Shown in pieces: positions 34,201 through 55,390 of a DNA stretch of 64,000 nucleotides. Origin of the DNA: Dimorphilus gyrociliatus (taxonomy: Eukaryota; Animalia; Annelida). Numbering within the stretch: the first letter of the stretch is position 1; every line of letters begins with the position of its first letter. The stretch spans positions 2,962,504 through 3,026,503 of the forward strand of contig CAJFCJ010000003.1 of the NCBI GenBank assembly GCA_904063045.1. The letters run 5' to 3'. The notes beneath the pieces were generated by a model. The model was not told the DNA's origin. It made no database searches and saw only the letters and a program-made list of their open reading frames with translations. The position numbers and the translations under genes are program-made.

Positions 34201-36814
34201 TTTCTCTCTTTCTTTTTCCTTTCTTTCCTTCGTTCCTTCATTCATTCATTCATTCAATTATATTATTTTTCTTGTATATTATGAGAGTAAAATTGTACTT
34301 TTCAGTTTAATAAACCCTTATATACGAAAAGGGAATACTATGCTAATATTTTCATACCGTAATCGTCAAAATATTTTGAAATATTAATGAGTATATTATC
34401 AATGTAATTTTTTATAACGACTTAACTATTAATTAATTAAATATAGTAAATATATGAATTTATATTCATTCATCTGTCTATATTTACAGGATATGAGTGT
34501 AGACAATTTCGTGAAATTTGACCTTAAGAAATCAATATTTCCAATTGGAAAAAAAATCTTTTGCATTAGTTTTTTGTCAATTTCAATTTTAAAACTGTAA
34601 ACTTTGGCGTTTCTCTCTTTCATTAATAATTTTTCATATTCAACTGAAACCTAAAAGATAAAAAGGCTGACGAGAGAAATTATTAAAACGTGAGCTGTCT
34701 ACCTAATATGGATTATTCCGAGTAGGTTCCTCACGAAATTGTCTCTTCTAATTATTCGTTCCCTTACAGAATCATTTGAAATAGACAATTACCACAAAAA
34801 TATTTCGTTTCCTCAATTAAAATTCTTGAAAACCTTTATCAGAAATCTCATAAAAAATTTAGCCTAATTTGCCTCTAAGAAGAATATCATACGTTCTCAC
34901 TGGCCCTAATTATCATCCACTTAATTGTTTTCATAATATGAAAGACGAGATTCTCAGTACTTGAGAAAAAATCTGCTTGTAAAAGAAAATAATCTGTTAA
35001 AATTCTCTTGTACGTGGTGAACAGATATTAATTAAGCCTATGGAGGTTTATTAATCTTTGATGTTATAATACTAGATGTTAGTAATGAGATAGCAGTTTC
35101 CCCTGTCTTTGTTACCTATTTTCTTTCAGTTTTCCTTACTATGCAAGCTGATTGTATGAATAAAATCGAAATTTCTATCAGAGAAATGTTTACTTTCTTT
35201 ATATAAAGACAGGTATCGCCATCTACGTTTGAAAAAAGCCAAATTGTTATGACCAACAGCAAGAGAGTATTTATCGTCTGCATAAAAAATCGAAAAGGCC
35301 CAATTTTTACGCTTCAATTTCCATAGGATTTTTCCTCTTTAGAGTCGAATAAAATAATTTCAAACCATATTTTCCTTTTTTACATCAAACGTACGTTTAA
35401 TATTGATTTCTTTTAAGAGGTGATAGATATATTATCGGAAAGATAAAACTTGCTTAATAATATCTTGGTTGTGTTATAAGTATGATTAATGTCATTATTA
35501 TTTGAGCGCAATCGCCTCTAAATGATTGGCAGTTAATAAAATTTTATGGAATGGTTTTGATTTATGAAATGTGTAAAATGAAAAAGAGAATGGAAAAATA
35601 AATAAAACGTTAGGCGATTCCTCTCAATCATCTTCACTTATACGTTGTATGATGTGCAATTTCCTTCCTATTTGTAACTATTGCATATCGGTTGTTAATA
35701 CGTAAAGAAACTAGGGAGCATACAAAAAAGAATTTGATCGATTCTACTTATAACCATCGGTTAGTGGAACCTAGAAGTTGCCGCTTCTGTAATCTCCCTT
35801 TTCTCAAGTGCCCCCCTGATATATTCCCATGTAGAAAGGGATCTTTTACAAAGAGCAAAAAGCTAAAAAGCCTCCTTGTTCCTATACAACGCCATCTACC
35901 TTAGCCCTTGAGCGAGCAGTTACCAAAATTAAGCGCAACATCTAAGGGGAGGAAAAAGGAGAAAATTTTTCAAAAGTCGTCTGATTTTGGCAATGACAGA
36001 ATGAAGAAAATCCGTTCTCACTAAGATAGGGAGGTGACAAATTTAGAGCGGACGCTATCAATTATGTAGCGAATCAGGCGTCGATACAACGCCTCGTCTA
36101 CCGTCCGAATATTTACACTCTGGCACCACCGACAAACAGTCCGCCACGTGATAAGGATCGAATCTCAATATTTATAGGCTAACTGTTAGTTGAGTTTATA
36201 ATATGAGGAAAATCGACATTGTACAGAGAAACTGTTTTTTCAGCATGCAGTGACAAACGGTCTGCAAGAAGAGTATTATCGAATCAACGACCGCAAACAG
36301 CTGCGCCTCCTTTGCGGTGTGAGAGATTGTCCTGGACGATTTAATGTTAGCTAAAAATGTGTACAGGCTATTCCTTGAATTCTTTTTTGGGCAGCTGTTA
36401 AAAAAGTACTTGTTGCCGTTTGCATTATTTACCTAACGGATTGCTTGGAAACGATTTTGTGCGAGTTTATATATAGTCTAATGGAATTGCAATGGCAGTA
36501 ACTAATATTTTTTCAACGCTTTCTACCGTTTCAACGCCCTCTCTAGGGAATTTTTTCAGCCTATAACTGATAACTTTTTCTTTTATCTCCATATATAAAC
36601 ACGGAAACTAACTTTTTCTCTTTTTTTTTCCATAAAAAATATCATTTTTTCTGTATTTTTTTCGTTTGCAAAAATTGGCTTTGTTTCTTTAAACCTTAAT
36701 ATATTAAGATTTTTTTAATCCAATTTTCAGGTTTAGTTTCGTTTTTCTGTCTTTCATTAATAAAATACATTAACAATCTCATTTTTTTGTGAAAAAAATA
36801 AATCCACAGTTCTA

Positions 36815-39800
36815 TCATAATGTTGCATTGCTGGTTTGAGTCAATGCGTGTCGTCCTCGATATTTGCCGAAGAGGATCTTACGAAAAGCGTGCCGAAAAT
36901 CCGGGTTGAAAAGCGTATAAATAACAGGATTGAGTAGGGAATTTGCATATCCGAGCCAGGAGATTACCGACTTGATAAGCGACGGTAAGTGGCAAAATTG
37001 CCGGCAGAATGGTTCAACAACGGCAACAATAAAGAAAGGTAACCAGCAAAGGACGAATGTACCCGTAATGATAGCCAATGTTCTTGCAGCTTTTCTTTCT
37101 CTTTTTGCCTCTAATTTATCCCTGGATGAAACATTTCTAGTCAAACCTTCCGCTTCCGTTGAACTCGTACTGTTATTCGATTGCTTTTCTGTAGTAGCAG
37201 ATTACGCTTATGATCAAGAAGGGCACCCTTCTTTTTTTCACCAAACCTTTATATCCCTCTTTTCCATCTCCTTATTCCCATCCCATTCTCCTCATATCCC
37301 TCTCAATCTAAGTCCCTCCCTTCTGCCCCGTTTTTCCCATTAAAAAATGGATATAATATGCAATAACCACGAACGTAATTTGCTACTACGTTTGCTTTTT
37401 TTCTTTTGAGATTTTTTGAAGCGTTTTTTTCGTATTCGCGACTTGGCCGCGTCGTATATCTTGATATAGATAATAATCATGACGAGTAGGGGCAAATAGA
37501 ATGCTCCAAAAGTGGAGAAGACGGTATAGCCTAAGTCCTGACTGATTCGACAGATACCACTTAGATCAGGGTCTGTGGCTGTCTCTTTCCAACCAAAAAG
37601 CGGTGGAACAGATATGGAAATGCCAACTATCCAACTAAGCGATATCATGATTAATATCGTTCGAGCCGATCGATTCCTTACATAGTCGACACGAGTAACG
37701 GCCCAATAACGATCTAGGGCTATGCAAACTAGATGCAATATGGAAGACGTGCAGCATAAGACATCAAAACTTATCCACATATCGCAGACCTGTTGCAATC
37801 AGAAAATCAAAAAACGTTAGTTATGGCAGTTTTAGTCGGATGAAAGGCACACTTCTGCTATCTACTGTTTCCAGAATCGTTTCTATACTCCTGTTTACAT
37901 CCAAGCTTAAATTCTCTTTCCCCCCAGCCAACCTCTCCTTTACCCCGTTCTTTGCCCTTTATCTACCTTCCATCCCTTCATATTTATAATTTTGGATTAG
38001 GCATAAAACCTTTTATTCCCTTTAAAGATAACTTTTTAAGAAAAAGAAATCGTTGGAAGCTCAGTAAAAATTTTATGCTCAAAAGAGAATGAAAAGAACT
38101 TTTTTGTGTTATCCTACGCAATAATCGCCCTTATTAATTTCCTTATTAGTCACCTTTCATTCTTCCTCATCTTTTTATTTTAACTAAAGTTATATACTAG
38201 AGCTATCTTTAGCAGGAAGCTATGTTTAGTACATATATATCTATATTTTAATTTTTTCCCCTGCTGACTTAAGTGGTCATAGCGTCCTGGTCACTTGATT
38301 CCTCTTTCTATAATATTTATTGTTTGCAATAAGGTTATTTGTTCTACATATATTTTATTGTAAAATGAGATTTTGTCTTTTATACTTTGTTTTAGCACTA
38401 CCATTGCCTATTTACAGTCATATTCCTAAAACAAAAAATACCAGTTTTCAATCAAATAAAATTATATACTATCGTAATTGTAACAGGATTCTTTTTAAAT
38501 GAGAGTACTGAAGAAAAGATTCTATAAAATTTACCTTTCTAATTGATGTAGTTTAAATTTTCAAGTTGTATAAGACATAAGATATACTTTTCTATAGTTG
38601 GATACTTCCTCTTTGAAGGTATTAGAAAGGAAAACGGAAATTCTATAATAGAGAGAGCACGTAAAAATCTTACTTTTTTTTTACTTGCTGCAAGGAAGAT
38701 ACTGTATTACTAACAGCATCGTAAGAATGATAGACTGCAAAAAGATACAATTTAGCTTGCATGATTAAATAATTCTTTTTACTTTTCTTATATATATTTA
38801 GGCCCTGTCATGGCAAATATATATCCCTAATTTTATGAATTGCCTACCCTAGATGGGTTTTTTTATGATTATTGATAAATAACTAGATATCTACAATTCG
38901 CTTTTCGTTATGAAAGATTATATAGACAAAATATAACAAGTAAAAGACAAAAATATTCGTGCAGATTGTTATTACTGGGCAAAAGAAATCCAGATTTACT
39001 AAATTTACAAATACTTGTCAAAGTAGAGAATTTTTTTTCCACTCCTAAGAAGAATATTCTATGATTAAACTAGGCCAAAAATATCCATATTTCCCTTTAC
39101 TTTCAGATCTTGAATAAAACTCTCTTTATATTCTCTCGAGCTATGATTTTTCCTTTCTTTTACTAAAAGATTATTTACTTTATATTTGGGAGATCGTGCA
39201 TAAAAAAGGAAAAATGCCGTCTACTCGAACGAACACAAAAGATGTAAAAAGACAGAAGATGATATCCTAATAATTTTATGCAAATCCGTATTCTTTTTAT
39301 AGAAATTCGTTTTTTTTTTCAAGATAAGTCAATTTATTGTTAAGGTAACAGTTTAGTATTATATTAACTAACTAAATGATATCAAATATTACACTTAGTC
39401 TTTGTGTTTTCCAAGCGAAATTGTGCGTTAATAATTTAACTGATGTGGTTAATTAAGTCTAACAGCTTTAACATTTATATATTGAAATATTAATTAATAC
39501 CAGTCAGAATCACAATTGCTAAAGTTAACGCATACAATCGGCTAATTTTTGTAGGTCATCAGGGGAAATAAAGACTTTTTGTCATGAAATCACAAATTTT
39601 GTTTGCATTAGAGTTGAAATATATAGGAATAATAAAAAGCTACATTTTTTTTGTCTCTCGTGGTGTTGAAAAAACACAAGGAAAACTATTCTCATATTCT
39701 AATGTTGTCTTTTAATGAAATTTTCAGCTGTTTCGTTAAAACCCCTCGCAAATTGAAAGTGTATACCAGATTTTTCCCATCAAAAGATGTAAAGACGTGC

Positions 39801-42205
39801 CCTCAACCAACAAGGTGTGAACATAACCTTTTACGGCAAATTATCTCTTTACTTCAGTATGTTTTAGTTCTGCACATAATTATACATGGTTTGAGATGTA
39901 AAAAGGGAAACTATAAGCCTAAAGAGATATTGGAATAAAGAAATTTTTTCATAAAAAAAAAACGAGACAAAGGATAGGAGAATGATATAAATTTGCATTG
40001 AAGATATGAAAGTATAGAGTATATATTAGAATATATACCTTTGCATAAATTTATGCAAATTATGTTACATTATATTTATATTTTACATCTATTTTTACAA
40101 ATTGAAATGTTCATCCATCTATAATTTCAGTTTATTTAGAGTTTATTATCCTTTTTTTTTAGATGTTTCTATATACAATCGGATTTTTTCTTACAAGTTA
40201 ATCGGGATTACAAACAGAAGGTAGCGGTTGTTTTCCTTTCTCTTTTAAACACTAGCTTAAGAGGCGAGAAAATTGATACTTGTAGTGTTTGGCTCGTTAT
40301 ATATTTCGAATGGGGAAAGGTAAGGCTAAAGAGCTACTTGAACAGAGATGAACTTAGCAACTAGCCTAGTTAATTTCAATTTAATACTACCAAAAATTTA
40401 ATATTCTTAATCAACTGATGCTGGTGAACACCTCTATGTTCTACATAAAATTGATTAAACATTAAATCTTGCAGCAGTTTAAGTAGGTTTAGCGGGTATT
40501 AGCTAAATAATATATGCTTTTTATTGATTATTACACGTAGGGTTTTCAGATTTTTGAAAGGAAATACTTCAAGTACTTTTTATATAACGAGAACTGAATA
40601 GTGAGACACTTTCTAACTTATTTAGTATCAAAAGCTACATATTTTTGTTTAGTGATGGTATATTCACTTTGATAATCTAAAAATTGTGATATAGAAAGAA
40701 AATGACAAGAGAAAAGATAAAATGTTTACTAATGACATCCTATTGCAGTTGTTAGGCCTATAATGTCAATTCGTCTTGTTACACCGAATGGTTGTGACAG
40801 TTAAGAATTTATGTGTTGTTATAAAGATTTGACAGGTATTTAATTCTAGTTTGTATGACAATTAAAGATTCGAACATTTAAAGTCATTGGTTATCTTTTC
40901 CTTCAGTTGGATATATTGTAGTCGTAATTATTATCAGCTCTATTATCATTATAATATTAATAATAATAATTACTATTATGGTTAATATTGTTATTATTAT
41001 TGTTGCTATAATTATTATTACATATACATACATACAAATATATTCCTTTTTTTCTTGTTATTTATATTAATCACCATAGATACTGAGTTGGTTTTTCAGA
41101 TATTCAACTAAATACCACATGTTGTAAATATTTAAAATAGGCAAACACTCACAGATGGATGAAATCGTACAATGCATTGAAAGCTATATTATTTCCTTTA
41201 TTTTATTTATCTAAGCGTAAAATAGACGCGCATCACCGAAAATTTGATAAATATCAATCTCAACTGTTTCTCTCTATCTCTATCTTTTCACACGCTTTAG
41301 TCAATTCTTCTATCTTTTCTCCCATTTCTTATTTTCTATCCCCAAAACAGTATTCCCCTGTCTTTACCTCTGTCTCTTTTTATATCCATCTGTCTTGGTA
41401 GCTAGATCGATAGGAAAAACAACTTTTCCATTATCTTTTGTATTATTATTGAGTATTTTCTTGCAGTTAAAGAAAAGTAAAAGAGAAAAGAGGAGGAAAT
41501 CATCTTTTGTTCAAGGATCTAATCTGTAGAGAAAGCAAAAGGAAAAAGGAATGACTCTAATCTTATCTGCTTGTAATTCCAATAATCGATGCACTATCCA
41601 GCAACAAACATCATCTGTAATCTGTTATTTTCGATTAGATTTTTACGAGGTTTTCTTTAGAAAAAAGTTTTCTAAACGCTGAACGATGTTCTTGTTTAAT
41701 GGACACTATGCTCTATTTTTTTTTTTCATTGCAGTTGCGGTTGGTGTTTCAATGAAAAAATTAGGTGATTCGAGAGGATAAGAGCCTCTTGAGGCTAAAG
41801 ATTTTATTTAAGTTTTCAATCTATAAATAGTCCCAGATTACGGATAGCCTAATATTTAATACCTAAAAGTGCTAACGTGAATATACAAACCTCAGAGCCC
41901 ATGAACCAACGAGTTGTTACTTCATTTACAGCCGCCAGCGGCATGACGAGCGAAGCGACCATGAGATCGGCAAAGGCGAGCGACGCCACTAAATAATTGT
42001 TAACGCAACGCAAATTCCTTTCGAGAGTGACGGCAGCGATGACAAAGACATTTCCAACGACTGTTGACAAAATTATAAGGCCTAGAACGATTGCTGTGAC
42101 GAGAAGGTGAGGCAAGCTGTGGATGGCAATGGGAGCGGAAGAGTCGTTAGAGGAAGCGTTATTCTCAAACACACTCCAATTATGTCCAACGGCACGCCAA
42201 CCCAT
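36815..42205 (-). CDS. 5-HT1-type serotonin receptor, 3 coding exons, ~362 aa
   Basis: Exons 42205-41891, 37789-37390 and 37188-36815. Aminergic hallmarks: GNVFV (TM1), SLAFADLMVA (TM2), WISFDVLCCTSSILHL with D3.32, DRY, SQDLGYTVFSTFGAFYLP (5-HT1-type TM5), KRERKAARTL, CWLPFF, WLGYANSLLNPVIY, and a short C-tail FRHAFRKILFGKY. The intron 2 boundaries (37389-37189) are inferred from frame: all three frames across this gap contain stops. Confidence 0.92.
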
Positions 42206-53500: not shown

Positions 53501-55390
53501 TATCTTTCAAAGAGTGTACATGCGTACTAGTTTACGGCAGACATTTTCTTTAATGTCTTTTATTATATTTCTATTCTCTGTCTTTCTTTTCTCTGCTTGA
53601 GCCCTCTTTCTCCCTTTTCCTCTATGTCTCTCTCTGTCTGCCTGTCTCACCCTTTTTCTTTCACTTTCAATCTAAACCTGTTCTCGTTACTTCATTTCAT
53701 CTTTCATACTTAAGCCCATTTTATAGAGGTTACTCCCAGGACTATCTAACGTCTGTCCAAGTTGACGATTTTCTCATCAACTTTCGAATAGAATGTTACA
53801 ACTGAGCGGAAAGGTCAGCAAACTCGATACATATAATATAAACATTTGTTTTCTATGTGTTGACGGCCAATAAAAGAGAAATTAAAAGCTTTATTTGATA
53901 TTTGATTTTTCTTTCCTTTCATATCGAATGTAACAAAAAATTACGATGAATGATGAAATAGTTTTAAATTGAACAAACAAATATAAAAAGGAAAAAAAAC
54001 ATATGGCTATATATTAAAAACACAGTTAGAAGCTATACAATAAATGCTCATAGTACTCTCAATGGGCTCATTTTATGAGATTGAATTTAATTTTCAAATA
54101 AACTCCTTGTTACACTCTATTATATACTCTGTTATGTAGGGAATAAAATGAAACAGAAAAATAATAGGCTAGAAAAAGATGGGGAAAAAAGAGAAAAAAC
54201 AAAGAGATAAGAGAGAAAGGGAGAAAAAGAAATAGAAAATGACAGGAAAGAGGGAGGTGGAAAGAGAGAGAGGAGGGATAAATATAAATTTTTACTCCAA
54301 ATAATACTCAGAAAATGATAGCCTGATATTTATACGACAACAATGAAATATATATAAAGGTAGAGAAATGAAGAGATTGATGAATACGTGGAGGTATTCG
54401 TGATACCAATATCCAATCACATTTAAAGATAATTTAGCGGGTAATAAGGATTGATATTTTTTAACATTAAAATACATGTTGTTCTAAGTATAGAATATGA
54501 TACAAAACCAAAACTGATATATATATATATATATATATATAATCATTACAATAATAAGCAATAAAATAGAAGGAAAAGAGGAAAAGAAACTGATAAAGAA
54601 AAATAAAAGGGAAAAAAAATCATCCAGTTCCGTGTAAAATTGCATTTTATACCGATTTTCCTTTCGCTTATCGTTGTTCCCTTTGAGAACAAAGCGAATA
54701 AATTCATTAAGTAAACCGGCAAAAAAAGGGTTTCGTGCATATTCGATTGCAACGACAAAATCATAGTATTAGTTTATTGCCATCATTAACGACAAATGAT
54801 TCATTTTGAGGAGGCACACCAGAAAGAAAACGATAGTTTTTTTTATGTTAAAACATCTTTCTTCTCGCTTAAAATATTTAATTCTTCATCGTTTCTGATT
54901 TTTTCCACTTTCCTTAAAGAATACTAACAGCGTCCTTGTTTATTTAGACTTGTTATTTACCCATCGACAATCTTAAGAGGAATAGATAAATTTCCTCTAA
55001 AAGTTTATCTTCTTCCTATTTTTCATACAATTCAATAACAATATGTCTAAATGGATAGATTTATAAATCTTCGTCCGACTAGATTGTACAGTCTACATAA
55101 TCTATTTACATTCAGTCTATACGTTTATAAATAAATATATAAATACATATGGATGCTATAAATAGATATTAAAACCACTTTCTTCCCTCGTTACTCTTTA
55201 CCCCGACAGAACAAAGCAAGCTGATCGGCTATTACTAGACCACTACCTACATTTTAAAAGAACACTGTCGCCATCTAATGTTAGATGAATGTACTAGAGA
55301 AGCAAATATCTTTTATTTTTTTAATTTTTAGCGTTTTAAAGTTCAAATTATGATATTATATACAAAGTTTGTCTTAGAATAACTTTTAAT

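Follow-up and report, generated by a model that had tools for sequence, protein, structure and literature searches.

The window analysed here, a stretch of 64,000 nt from the annelid Dimorphilus gyrociliatus (contig CAJFCJ010000003.1, positions 2,962,504 to 3,026,503 of the forward strand), carries on its minus strand a three-exon gene which, judged by its sequence, is a 5-HT1-like aminergic G protein-coupled receptor (GPCR). Our subject is its second intron, 201 nt in length: the two ends of this intron pair with each other in a helix that stops flush with the splice sites, the intron is removed exactly at those sites in RNA, and both paired segments are conserved in a sister lineage. The exons were searched separately, exon by exon. 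Pfam domain 7tm_1 was matched by exon 2 at 9.2e-30 and by exon 3 at 1.3e-18, and among solved structures 5-HT1A was the closest to exon 2 (8e-43), followed by 5-HT1F, 5-HT1B, 5-HT1E, 5-HT5A and 5-HT7. Likewise, a word search with a 152-aa open reading frame (ORF), comprising exon 2 and the 5' arm of the helix, had 5-HT1A and 5-HT5A as its named matches; the exon ORFs of the window itself, looked up as exact matches, were absent from the protein collection, and no lineages were added in this way. The intron lies in the lysine-rich beginning of intracellular loop 3 (ICL3), in phase 1, and splicing restores the reading frame, with exon 2 ending in phase 1 and C+AA then leading into transmembrane segments 6 and 7 (TM6-TM7). 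An initial annotation of this stretch, made from the letters alone, had assigned the intron to a 5-HT1 receptor, and the 7tm_1 domain, the nearest solved relative and the continuing frame all bear this out.

On the minus strand, the intron (37389..37189) starts with GTAGTAGCAAATTACGTTCGTGGTTA and ends with TGATCATAAGCGTAATCTGCTACTAC-AG. Over 26 positions these two arms pair, by hand count, with 20 Watson-Crick pairs, 4 G-U pairs and 2 A-C mismatches, transitions accounting for all 6 of the non-Watson-Crick positions. At the base of the helix, G1 (37389) pairs with C37191, and the AG (37190-37189) is left over. This layout, including the AG overhang, had been described in the initial annotation and was reproduced from the sequence, by the hand count and by RNAfold. 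A repeat search returned the outer 16 nt of the arms (37191-37206 and 37374-37389) as an inverted repeat with 94% complementarity. The intron folds at -46.2 kcal/mol (z=-3.52), and in the comparison with shuffled sequence 0 of 200 shuffles were as good; the helix is found in both the minimum free energy and the centroid structures, and it survives the addition of 80 nt from each flanking exon. As the initial annotation had proposed, the sense strand pairs better than the antisense strand (-29.7 versus -24.2 kcal/mol for the arm duplex alone). We also scored for end pairing every GT..AG pair of the window with a spacing of 40-600 nt, which makes about 86,000 pairs on each strand. TA microsatellite repeats aside, the 201-nt intron came out on top with a score of 20; composition-matched random sequence reached 16 at most in 24 strand scans. 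Two other candidates, at 33560-33474 and 54938-55058, were rejected, being non-coding or low-complexity sequence with no flanking coding sequence. In other words, the GT..AG scan found no other convincing end-paired intron in the 64-kb window, which agrees with the earlier impression that the remaining introns have no comparable structure. The terminal helix is confirmed as real, and is far beyond chance.

Two smaller observations concern the duplex itself. Its A-C mismatches, at 37380 and 37209, put adenosines opposite cytidines within 26 bp of helix, and ADAR enzymes prefer an adenosine that lies opposite a cytidine in a duplex; no A-to-G differences were found at 37380 or 37209 in the contigs described below, though contigs drop rare variants. 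A search of Rfam over 35800-38200 at E<=1 gave no match.

The splice signals at both ends of the intron are weak, as had been supposed. The donor, AAC/GUAGUA, is without the G at -1 and the G at +5 of the established metazoan donor consensus, and the acceptor has no long pyrimidine tract, only a short CCCUUCUU stretch upstream. A UUGAU motif within the 3' arm, with its A at 37214 and thus 25 nt before the 3' splice site, is a candidate branch point. We considered and rejected a U12-type intron, the donor GUAGUA being neither AUAUCC nor GUAUCC.

RNA evidence was available from four runs, X6 to X9, all in the form of Logan contigs, whose depths and ratios are rough. In X6, an RNA metatranscriptome, a 628-nt contig joins 37188 to 37390 exactly and skips the 201 nt between them (CT..AC on the plus strand); the shorter side of the joint measures 194 nt, and the joint has no ambiguous letters ('both' = 0). 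In X9, which is RNA by guess, there is a fork: the flanking exon contigs terminate exactly at 37188 and 37390, with a joined form at depth 25.4 and an unspliced contig (37159-37419) at depth 29.6. The 201-nt intron is a spliceosomal GT-AG intron, removed exactly at 37389/37189 in two studies, and the joints in X6 and X9 are precisely those that the initial annotation had predicted. Template switching during reverse transcription was rejected as a source of the junction, since the two sides of the joint have no letters in common and the skipped segment has GT..AG borders and is in frame. In the cDNA library X7, the junction of exons 1 and 2 is spliced, exon 1 sequence appearing as a loose end from 37791 onward, and the exon 3 contig (36752-37389) reads through the whole intron and stops at 37389, abutting a 5' adapter. 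We take the loose ends in X7 to be a SMART-type template-switch adapter and an oligo-dT primer (internal A-run at 37396). X8 adds a contig that runs from exon 3 into the intron up to 37257. Intron-containing contigs are therefore present in three of the four runs (X7, X8 and X9) beside spliced ones, so that splicing of the 201-nt intron looks incomplete, with spliced and intron-containing transcripts co-existing.

Two details of these runs allow several interpretations. First, the X7 library contains a cDNA or RNA 5' end that falls exactly at G1, with the intron and exon 3 attached; this could be a lariat-3'-exon intermediate, or could result from snap-back of first-strand cDNA at the end of the inverted repeat. 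Second, X9 might be a DNA run from animals polymorphic for presence or absence of the intron, as the similar depths of the joined and unspliced forms would allow. We consider this less likely, because depth drops from ~51 to ~4 in the 3' untranslated region (3' UTR) and nothing was mapped beyond 37858. The upstream limit of X9 is itself of some interest: contig 14 (37792-37858) covers the 67 nt before exon 2, that is, the end of intron 1, at about the depth of exon 2, with nothing farther upstream. This coverage could have any of three causes: transcription that starts internally and yields a transcript lacking TM1-2, RNA that is unspliced, or divergence that leaves a gap.

For the comparison between lineages, the word search with the 152-aa ORF yielded a sister lineage (P0001, 95% identity, on Logan contigs L001-L003), and the comparison covers this one diverged lineage plus the close lineage of X7 and X9. 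Between L001 and the window, identity is ~90-98% in coding sequence and 50-85% in other non-coding DNA, where indels are numerous. Against this background, the arms are changed at only 1 of 52 sites, whereas the loop between them is changed at 28 of 145 aligned sites and has 3 indels besides (Fisher p=0.0012), a difference that clearly points to purifying selection on both arms. The first differences outside the arms, at 37360 and 37221, lie a few bases beyond the complementary segments. The sole arm change in L001 (37373, U17>C) converts a U-G wobble into C-G and takes the duplex from -29.7 to -32.1 kcal/mol; the L001 intron as a whole folds to the same helix (z=-4.1). The 3' arm is unchanged in L001-L003 and in the contigs of X7, X8 and X9, and the last 28 nt of the intron are identical to L001 throughout (28/28), as against 24/28 for intron 1, which has an ordinary pyrimidine tract. 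The X7/X9 lineage, at ~2.5% divergence, differs at one arm position (37372, U18>C), where a U-A pair adjoining an existing mismatch is lost and a duplex of -28.2 kcal/mol is left.

Conservation of this kind could also arise if each arm were conserved separately, the 5' arm as donor context and/or as coding sequence of an intron-retaining isoform, and the 3' arm for its branch point, pyrimidine stretch and acceptor. Indeed, the branch-point candidate and the acceptor fall in the 3' arm, and the 5' arm encodes SSKLRSWL of the retained form. However, donor context usually constrains ~6-8 nt rather than 26, both complementary segments are conserved in full together with a few bases beyond them, the 3' end of the neighbouring intron is less conserved (24/28), and the only arm change relative to L001 is one that improves pairing. 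Of the accounts considered here we hold this one to be the least probable. The coordinates of the gene, the intron and its parts are collected in Table 1.

Table 1. Features of the receptor gene and of the 201-nt intron, in the order of transcription (coordinates are those of the window)
Feature	Position	Strand	Description
Exon 1	41891..42205	-	ATG at 42205; N-terminus, TM1-TM2; donor GAG/GTTTGT; ORF motifs GNVFVIAAV...LAFADL
Intron 1	37790..41890	-	~4.1 kb, GT..AG; ordinary T-rich tract before acceptor; spliced in X7 contig 4
Exon 2	37390..37789	-	TM3 with DRY, TM4, TM5, start of ICL3; ends in phase 1
Direct repeat, upstream copy	37390..37399	-	AAAAGCAAAC; exonic, abuts intron
201-nt intron	37189..37389	-	201 nt, GT..AG; junction 37188/37390 in X6 and X9
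5' arm of terminal helix	37364..37389	-	Begins at G1 of weak donor AAC/GUAGUA
Intron interior (loop)	37217..37363	-	147 nt, purine-rich, branched; in-frame stop of retained form at 37342-37340
3' arm of terminal helix	37191..37216	-	Contains the sole yUnAy branch-point candidate
Terminal AG	37189..37190	-	2-nt 3' overhang; unpaired probability 0.995 and 0.78
Direct repeat, downstream copy	37179..37188	-	AAAAGCAATC; exonic, abuts intron; 9/10 identical to upstream copy
Exon 3	36815..37188	-	Remaining ICL3, TM6 CWLPFF, TM7 NPVIY, C-terminus, stop

As the interpretation that we favour, with a probability of roughly 0.6, we propose that the terminal helix is maintained by selection as an intramolecular bridge that aids splice-site pairing in a long, weakly signalled intron. 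The median intron of the Dimorphilus genome is 66 bp, and in this species short introns are spliced better and longer ones are retained more (PMC7854359); at 201 nt, the intron has three times the median length. The helix would set both splice sites and the probable branch point side by side, and the spliceosome could thereby pair the right ends of a long and poorly marked intron. Because the helix buries the 5' splice site at equilibrium, we infer that the donor is bound by U1 during transcription, while the 3' arm is still to be made, or else that helicases open the outer helix; the inner helix would meanwhile hold the intron's two ends together. Incomplete splicing would then lead to the accumulation of intron-containing transcripts. 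We prefer a bridge since splicing uses precisely the ends of the helix, and since long introns are retained more in this species anyway.

Several points weigh against a bridge. The helix buries the donor, the branch-point candidate and the region of the 3' splice site, the unpaired probability being <0.01 for G1-A6, and burial of splice sites in a helix inhibits splicing in other systems. The presence of intron-containing contigs in three of the four runs fits an inhibitory role equally well. The change at 37372 (U>C) weakens the helix and is uncompensated, yet X9 is still spliced at the same sites. Covariation of the stem among relatives, which the initial annotation had named as a check, came out only in part: the arms are conserved and one U-G pair has become C-G, but no compensatory double change was found in the arms of L001-L003 or X7/X9, so covariation does not prove pairing. 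Finally, each arm could be conserved by itself, for its splice signals or for the coding of the retained-form tail.

The inhibitory role deserves to be set out more fully. Here the helix would work as a brake which sequesters both splice sites, so that some transcripts keep the intron, and would amount to a retention switch that yields a five-TM fragment ending SSKLRSWLLHIISIF or lowers the dose of receptor. At equilibrium, pairing of the 5' splice site exceeds 99%; unspliced forms occur in X7, a definite cDNA library, in X8, and in X9 at 29.6 against 25.4 for the joined form; the L001 lineage has the stop codon of the retained form at the same position; and, this being the last coding intron, a retained mRNA would probably escape exon-junction-dependent decay. 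However, the contigs, whose depths are crude, do not show retention to be regulated by tissue, stage or signal. The tail of the retained form beyond the arm is changed at 3 of 6 residues in L001 (HIISIF to YIVTIF), with 3 non-synonymous changes to 1 synonymous, and so gives no sign of selection on the peptide. Retention may moreover simply follow from length, longer introns being more retained in the species (PMC7854359). Of the switch suggested in the initial annotation, what stands is the co-existence of the two transcript forms and the predicted end of the retained one at SSKLRSWLLHIISIF; its regulatory side found no support in the contigs or in the tail. We regard a brake as unlikely, and continue with the bridge as our working interpretation.

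A helix of 26 bp is long enough for Dicer, and the intron could in principle serve as a mirtron-like precursor: after splicing and debranching, Dicer would cut the helix to a ~22-nt duplex, and the conservation of the arms would reflect a small RNA and its partner strand. The geometry noted in the initial annotation is indeed present, with G1 paired and the AG left as a 2-nt 3' overhang, and conserved arms around a diverged middle are the pattern of microRNA precursors. The dimensions do not follow suit. The mirtrons of Drosophila, C. elegans and mammals are hairpins of ~55-120 nt with small terminal loops, and are defined by small-RNA reads. Those are short hairpins made of a whole intron, whereas the present one has 201 nt with a branched interior of 147 nt, and Rfam gave no match at E<=1. 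A precursor of this kind is very improbable in our estimate.

With regard to the origin of the intron, two more distant homologues were informative. The homologue on L004 (59% identity) has TM1-TM5 in one ORF and is continuous from ICL3 to TM6 save for an unrelated ~80-nt insertion, with no intron at the equivalent site. In the homologue on L007 (50% identity), a GC-AG intron lies 17 codons earlier, and the rest reads without interruption through the equivalent site in ICL3. The absence of an intron at this site from both indicates that the 201-nt intron is lineage-specific, with the caveat that orthology of L004 and L007 is uncertain at 50-59% identity. Each of these homologues has a feature of its own in the same region. 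The ~80-nt ICL3 insertion in the receptor gene on L004 (L004:2310-2410, a JGI metagenome contig) is flanked by a 17-nt direct repeat, GCGG[C/T]GATCCAGCTGAC, and contains four TGACGTCA palindromes; a GT..AG reading from 2324 to 2403 would restore the frame, and this may thus be a further intron born by insertion, within the same loop and the same gene family. In L007 (5340-6056), the ~720-nt intron lies between KIFQ and AARARIRK, has an apparent GC-AG border (CAG/GCAAGT) and holds long GT/TG microsatellites.

In the window, the 201-nt intron is bordered by the two copies of a 10-nt direct repeat (Table 1), which match at 9 of 10 positions; the empirical chance of such a repeat comes to 4.7e-4 across all positions of the window and to 1.5e-3 in A-rich contexts, and the repeat has the look of a target-site duplication (TSD). 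Both copies remain in the mRNA, and an ancestor with a single copy would be 10 nt shorter and out of frame. Because two exonic copies add 10 nt, insertion into an intact ORF would call for an additional indel, plausibly in the A-runs nearby, unless the repeat arose in some other way. A simple TSD was therefore rejected as a sufficient model. No second copy of the element was found in the 64-kb window, either with the 16-nt terminal inverted repeat (TIR) at <=3 mismatches or with a sensitive blastn search of the whole intron; these searches recovered only the element itself and weak GA-rich low-complexity matches. A metagenome scan for GTAGTAGCARATTACG hit at least 119 contigs, and among the contigs listed each had a single match and none had both arms; so many contigs are about what a 16-mer would hit by chance in a collection of this size, which makes the scan uninformative as to further copies. 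The Dimorphilus genome does carry MITEs (miniature inverted-repeat transposable elements), Mariner and MULE elements (PMC7854359). Taken from the sequence, descent of the paired ends from the inverted repeats of an inserted non-autonomous DNA element of the MITE type is a real possibility, which we would nevertheless place somewhat below even odds. The initial proposal of an introner-type gain thus retains the TIR-like arms, the 9/10 direct repeat and the lineage-specific position in its favour, but lacks a second copy in the window and has to contend with two exonic repeats and their 10 extra nt.

If the ends of the intron did descend from such an element, their pairing need not have a role: the arms might be the decaying inverted repeats of an old MITE-type insertion that is spliced at its ends. 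TIR-like arms that differ by transitions only, a direct repeat of 9/10 flush with the intron (p ~5e-4 to 1.5e-3), a position not common to the homologues L004 and L007, and a genome that carries MITEs, Mariner and MULE elements (PMC7854359) are all compatible with an incidental relic. However, neutral arms should diverge like the loop (19%) or like other non-coding DNA (15-50%), and they are changed at 1 site of 52. Nor did the window contain a second copy of the element or its TIR, and both repeat copies are in the mRNA, where an ancestor with one copy would have 10 nt less and a shifted frame. We consider a relic without function highly unlikely, whatever the origin of the arms, and return to a helix that is under selection as a bridge.

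Comparison with known systems places the intron between two kinds of precedent. Its function would bring it nearest to the structure-bridged introns of teleosts, its form to the TIR-ended introns of tunicates. In the (AC)m-(GT)n introns of zebrafish and other teleosts, intron-bridging helices enforce splice-site pairing, and experiments showed these introns to be independent of U2AF2 (Lin et al. 2016, PMC4691745). These share with the present intron complementary segments at opposite ends, a stable bridge and poor pyrimidine tracts. However, the teleost arms are dinucleotide repeats that lie near the splice sites and not flush with them, whereas here a unique 26-nt sequence runs from G1 to 2 nt before the 3' end, and its function is a prediction. 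The MITE-derived introns of Fritillaria borealis, as far as they are described in the summaries of that work, have TIRs as their ends, species-specific positions and short direct repeats at their borders (Henriet et al. 2019, summarised in PMC11282704; 10.1101/2025.08.15.670264). According to the same summaries, they are mostly non-GT/AG, form multi-copy families and have 3-nt duplications, unlike the present GT-AG intron with no second copy in the window and a 10-nt repeat whose copies are both exonic.

Introners, known from Micromonas, Aureococcus, dinoflagellates and others, are likewise TIR-bounded insertions in coding sequence that are removed by the spliceosome (PMC9860276; PMC11282704). 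They occur in many near-identical copies, though, and for one of their splice sites they usually co-opt the target-site duplication, one copy of which is then removed with the intron; neither feature was found here. The nonconventional introns of euglenids resemble ours in that pairing brings the ends together, in having no pyrimidine tract and in TSD-like repeats at the junction (PMC11282704). They differ in their non-canonical borders, in core pairings of ~3 bp at +4..+6 and -8..-6, and in a possibly non-spliceosomal removal, as against GT-AG borders and a 26-bp helix in the present case. The likeness to mirtrons, by contrast, is limited to the hairpin that starts at the G of GU and to the AG that forms the 2-nt 3' overhang.

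How the spliceosome recognizes the correct pair of sites in poorly signalled introns is still debated, as is the rise of new introns in animals. The Dimorphilus intron, from an annelid with a compact genome, bears on both questions: its 26-bp helix has a unique sequence and ends flush with the splice sites, its splicing has been verified, its arms appear to be selected in a sister lineage, and a natural variant (37372 U>C) weakens one pair. Should the helix prove necessary, the range of structure-defined introns, with teleosts, tunicates and protists in it so far, would come to include Spiralia, with Dimorphilus as a tractable system. A wider proposal, which we advance tentatively and consider doubtful, is that the intron belongs to a genome-wide class in this annelid, made up of introns that begin and end in inverted repeats which reach exactly to the splice sites and are maintained by selection. 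Introns of this class, possibly seeded by DNA transposons, would be recognized through their helix; in the receptor gene, the helix would also set the ratio of full receptor to an intron-retaining transcript immune to nonsense-mediated decay. The animal precedents for it so far would be tunicates and, in a different form, teleosts; the Dimorphilus genome paper says nothing of inverted-repeat introns (PMC7854359). For annotation, wherever splice signals are weak, the helix could serve as a practical guide to the true borders of introns.

Two further observations concern other parts of the gene. Intron 1, at 4.1 kb, contrasts with the median intron of 66 bp and contains an AT-rich simple repeat of a trinucleotide type at ~40884-41033; large introns have been linked to open chromatin in the Dimorphilus genome paper (PMC7854359). 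Downstream of the receptor stop codon, at 36200-36600, lies a block that is 92-100% identical to L001, as against 62-82% in the flanking 3' UTR. This conserved block, which has no Rfam match, holds short ORFs only (41 aa in the window and 81 aa in L001).

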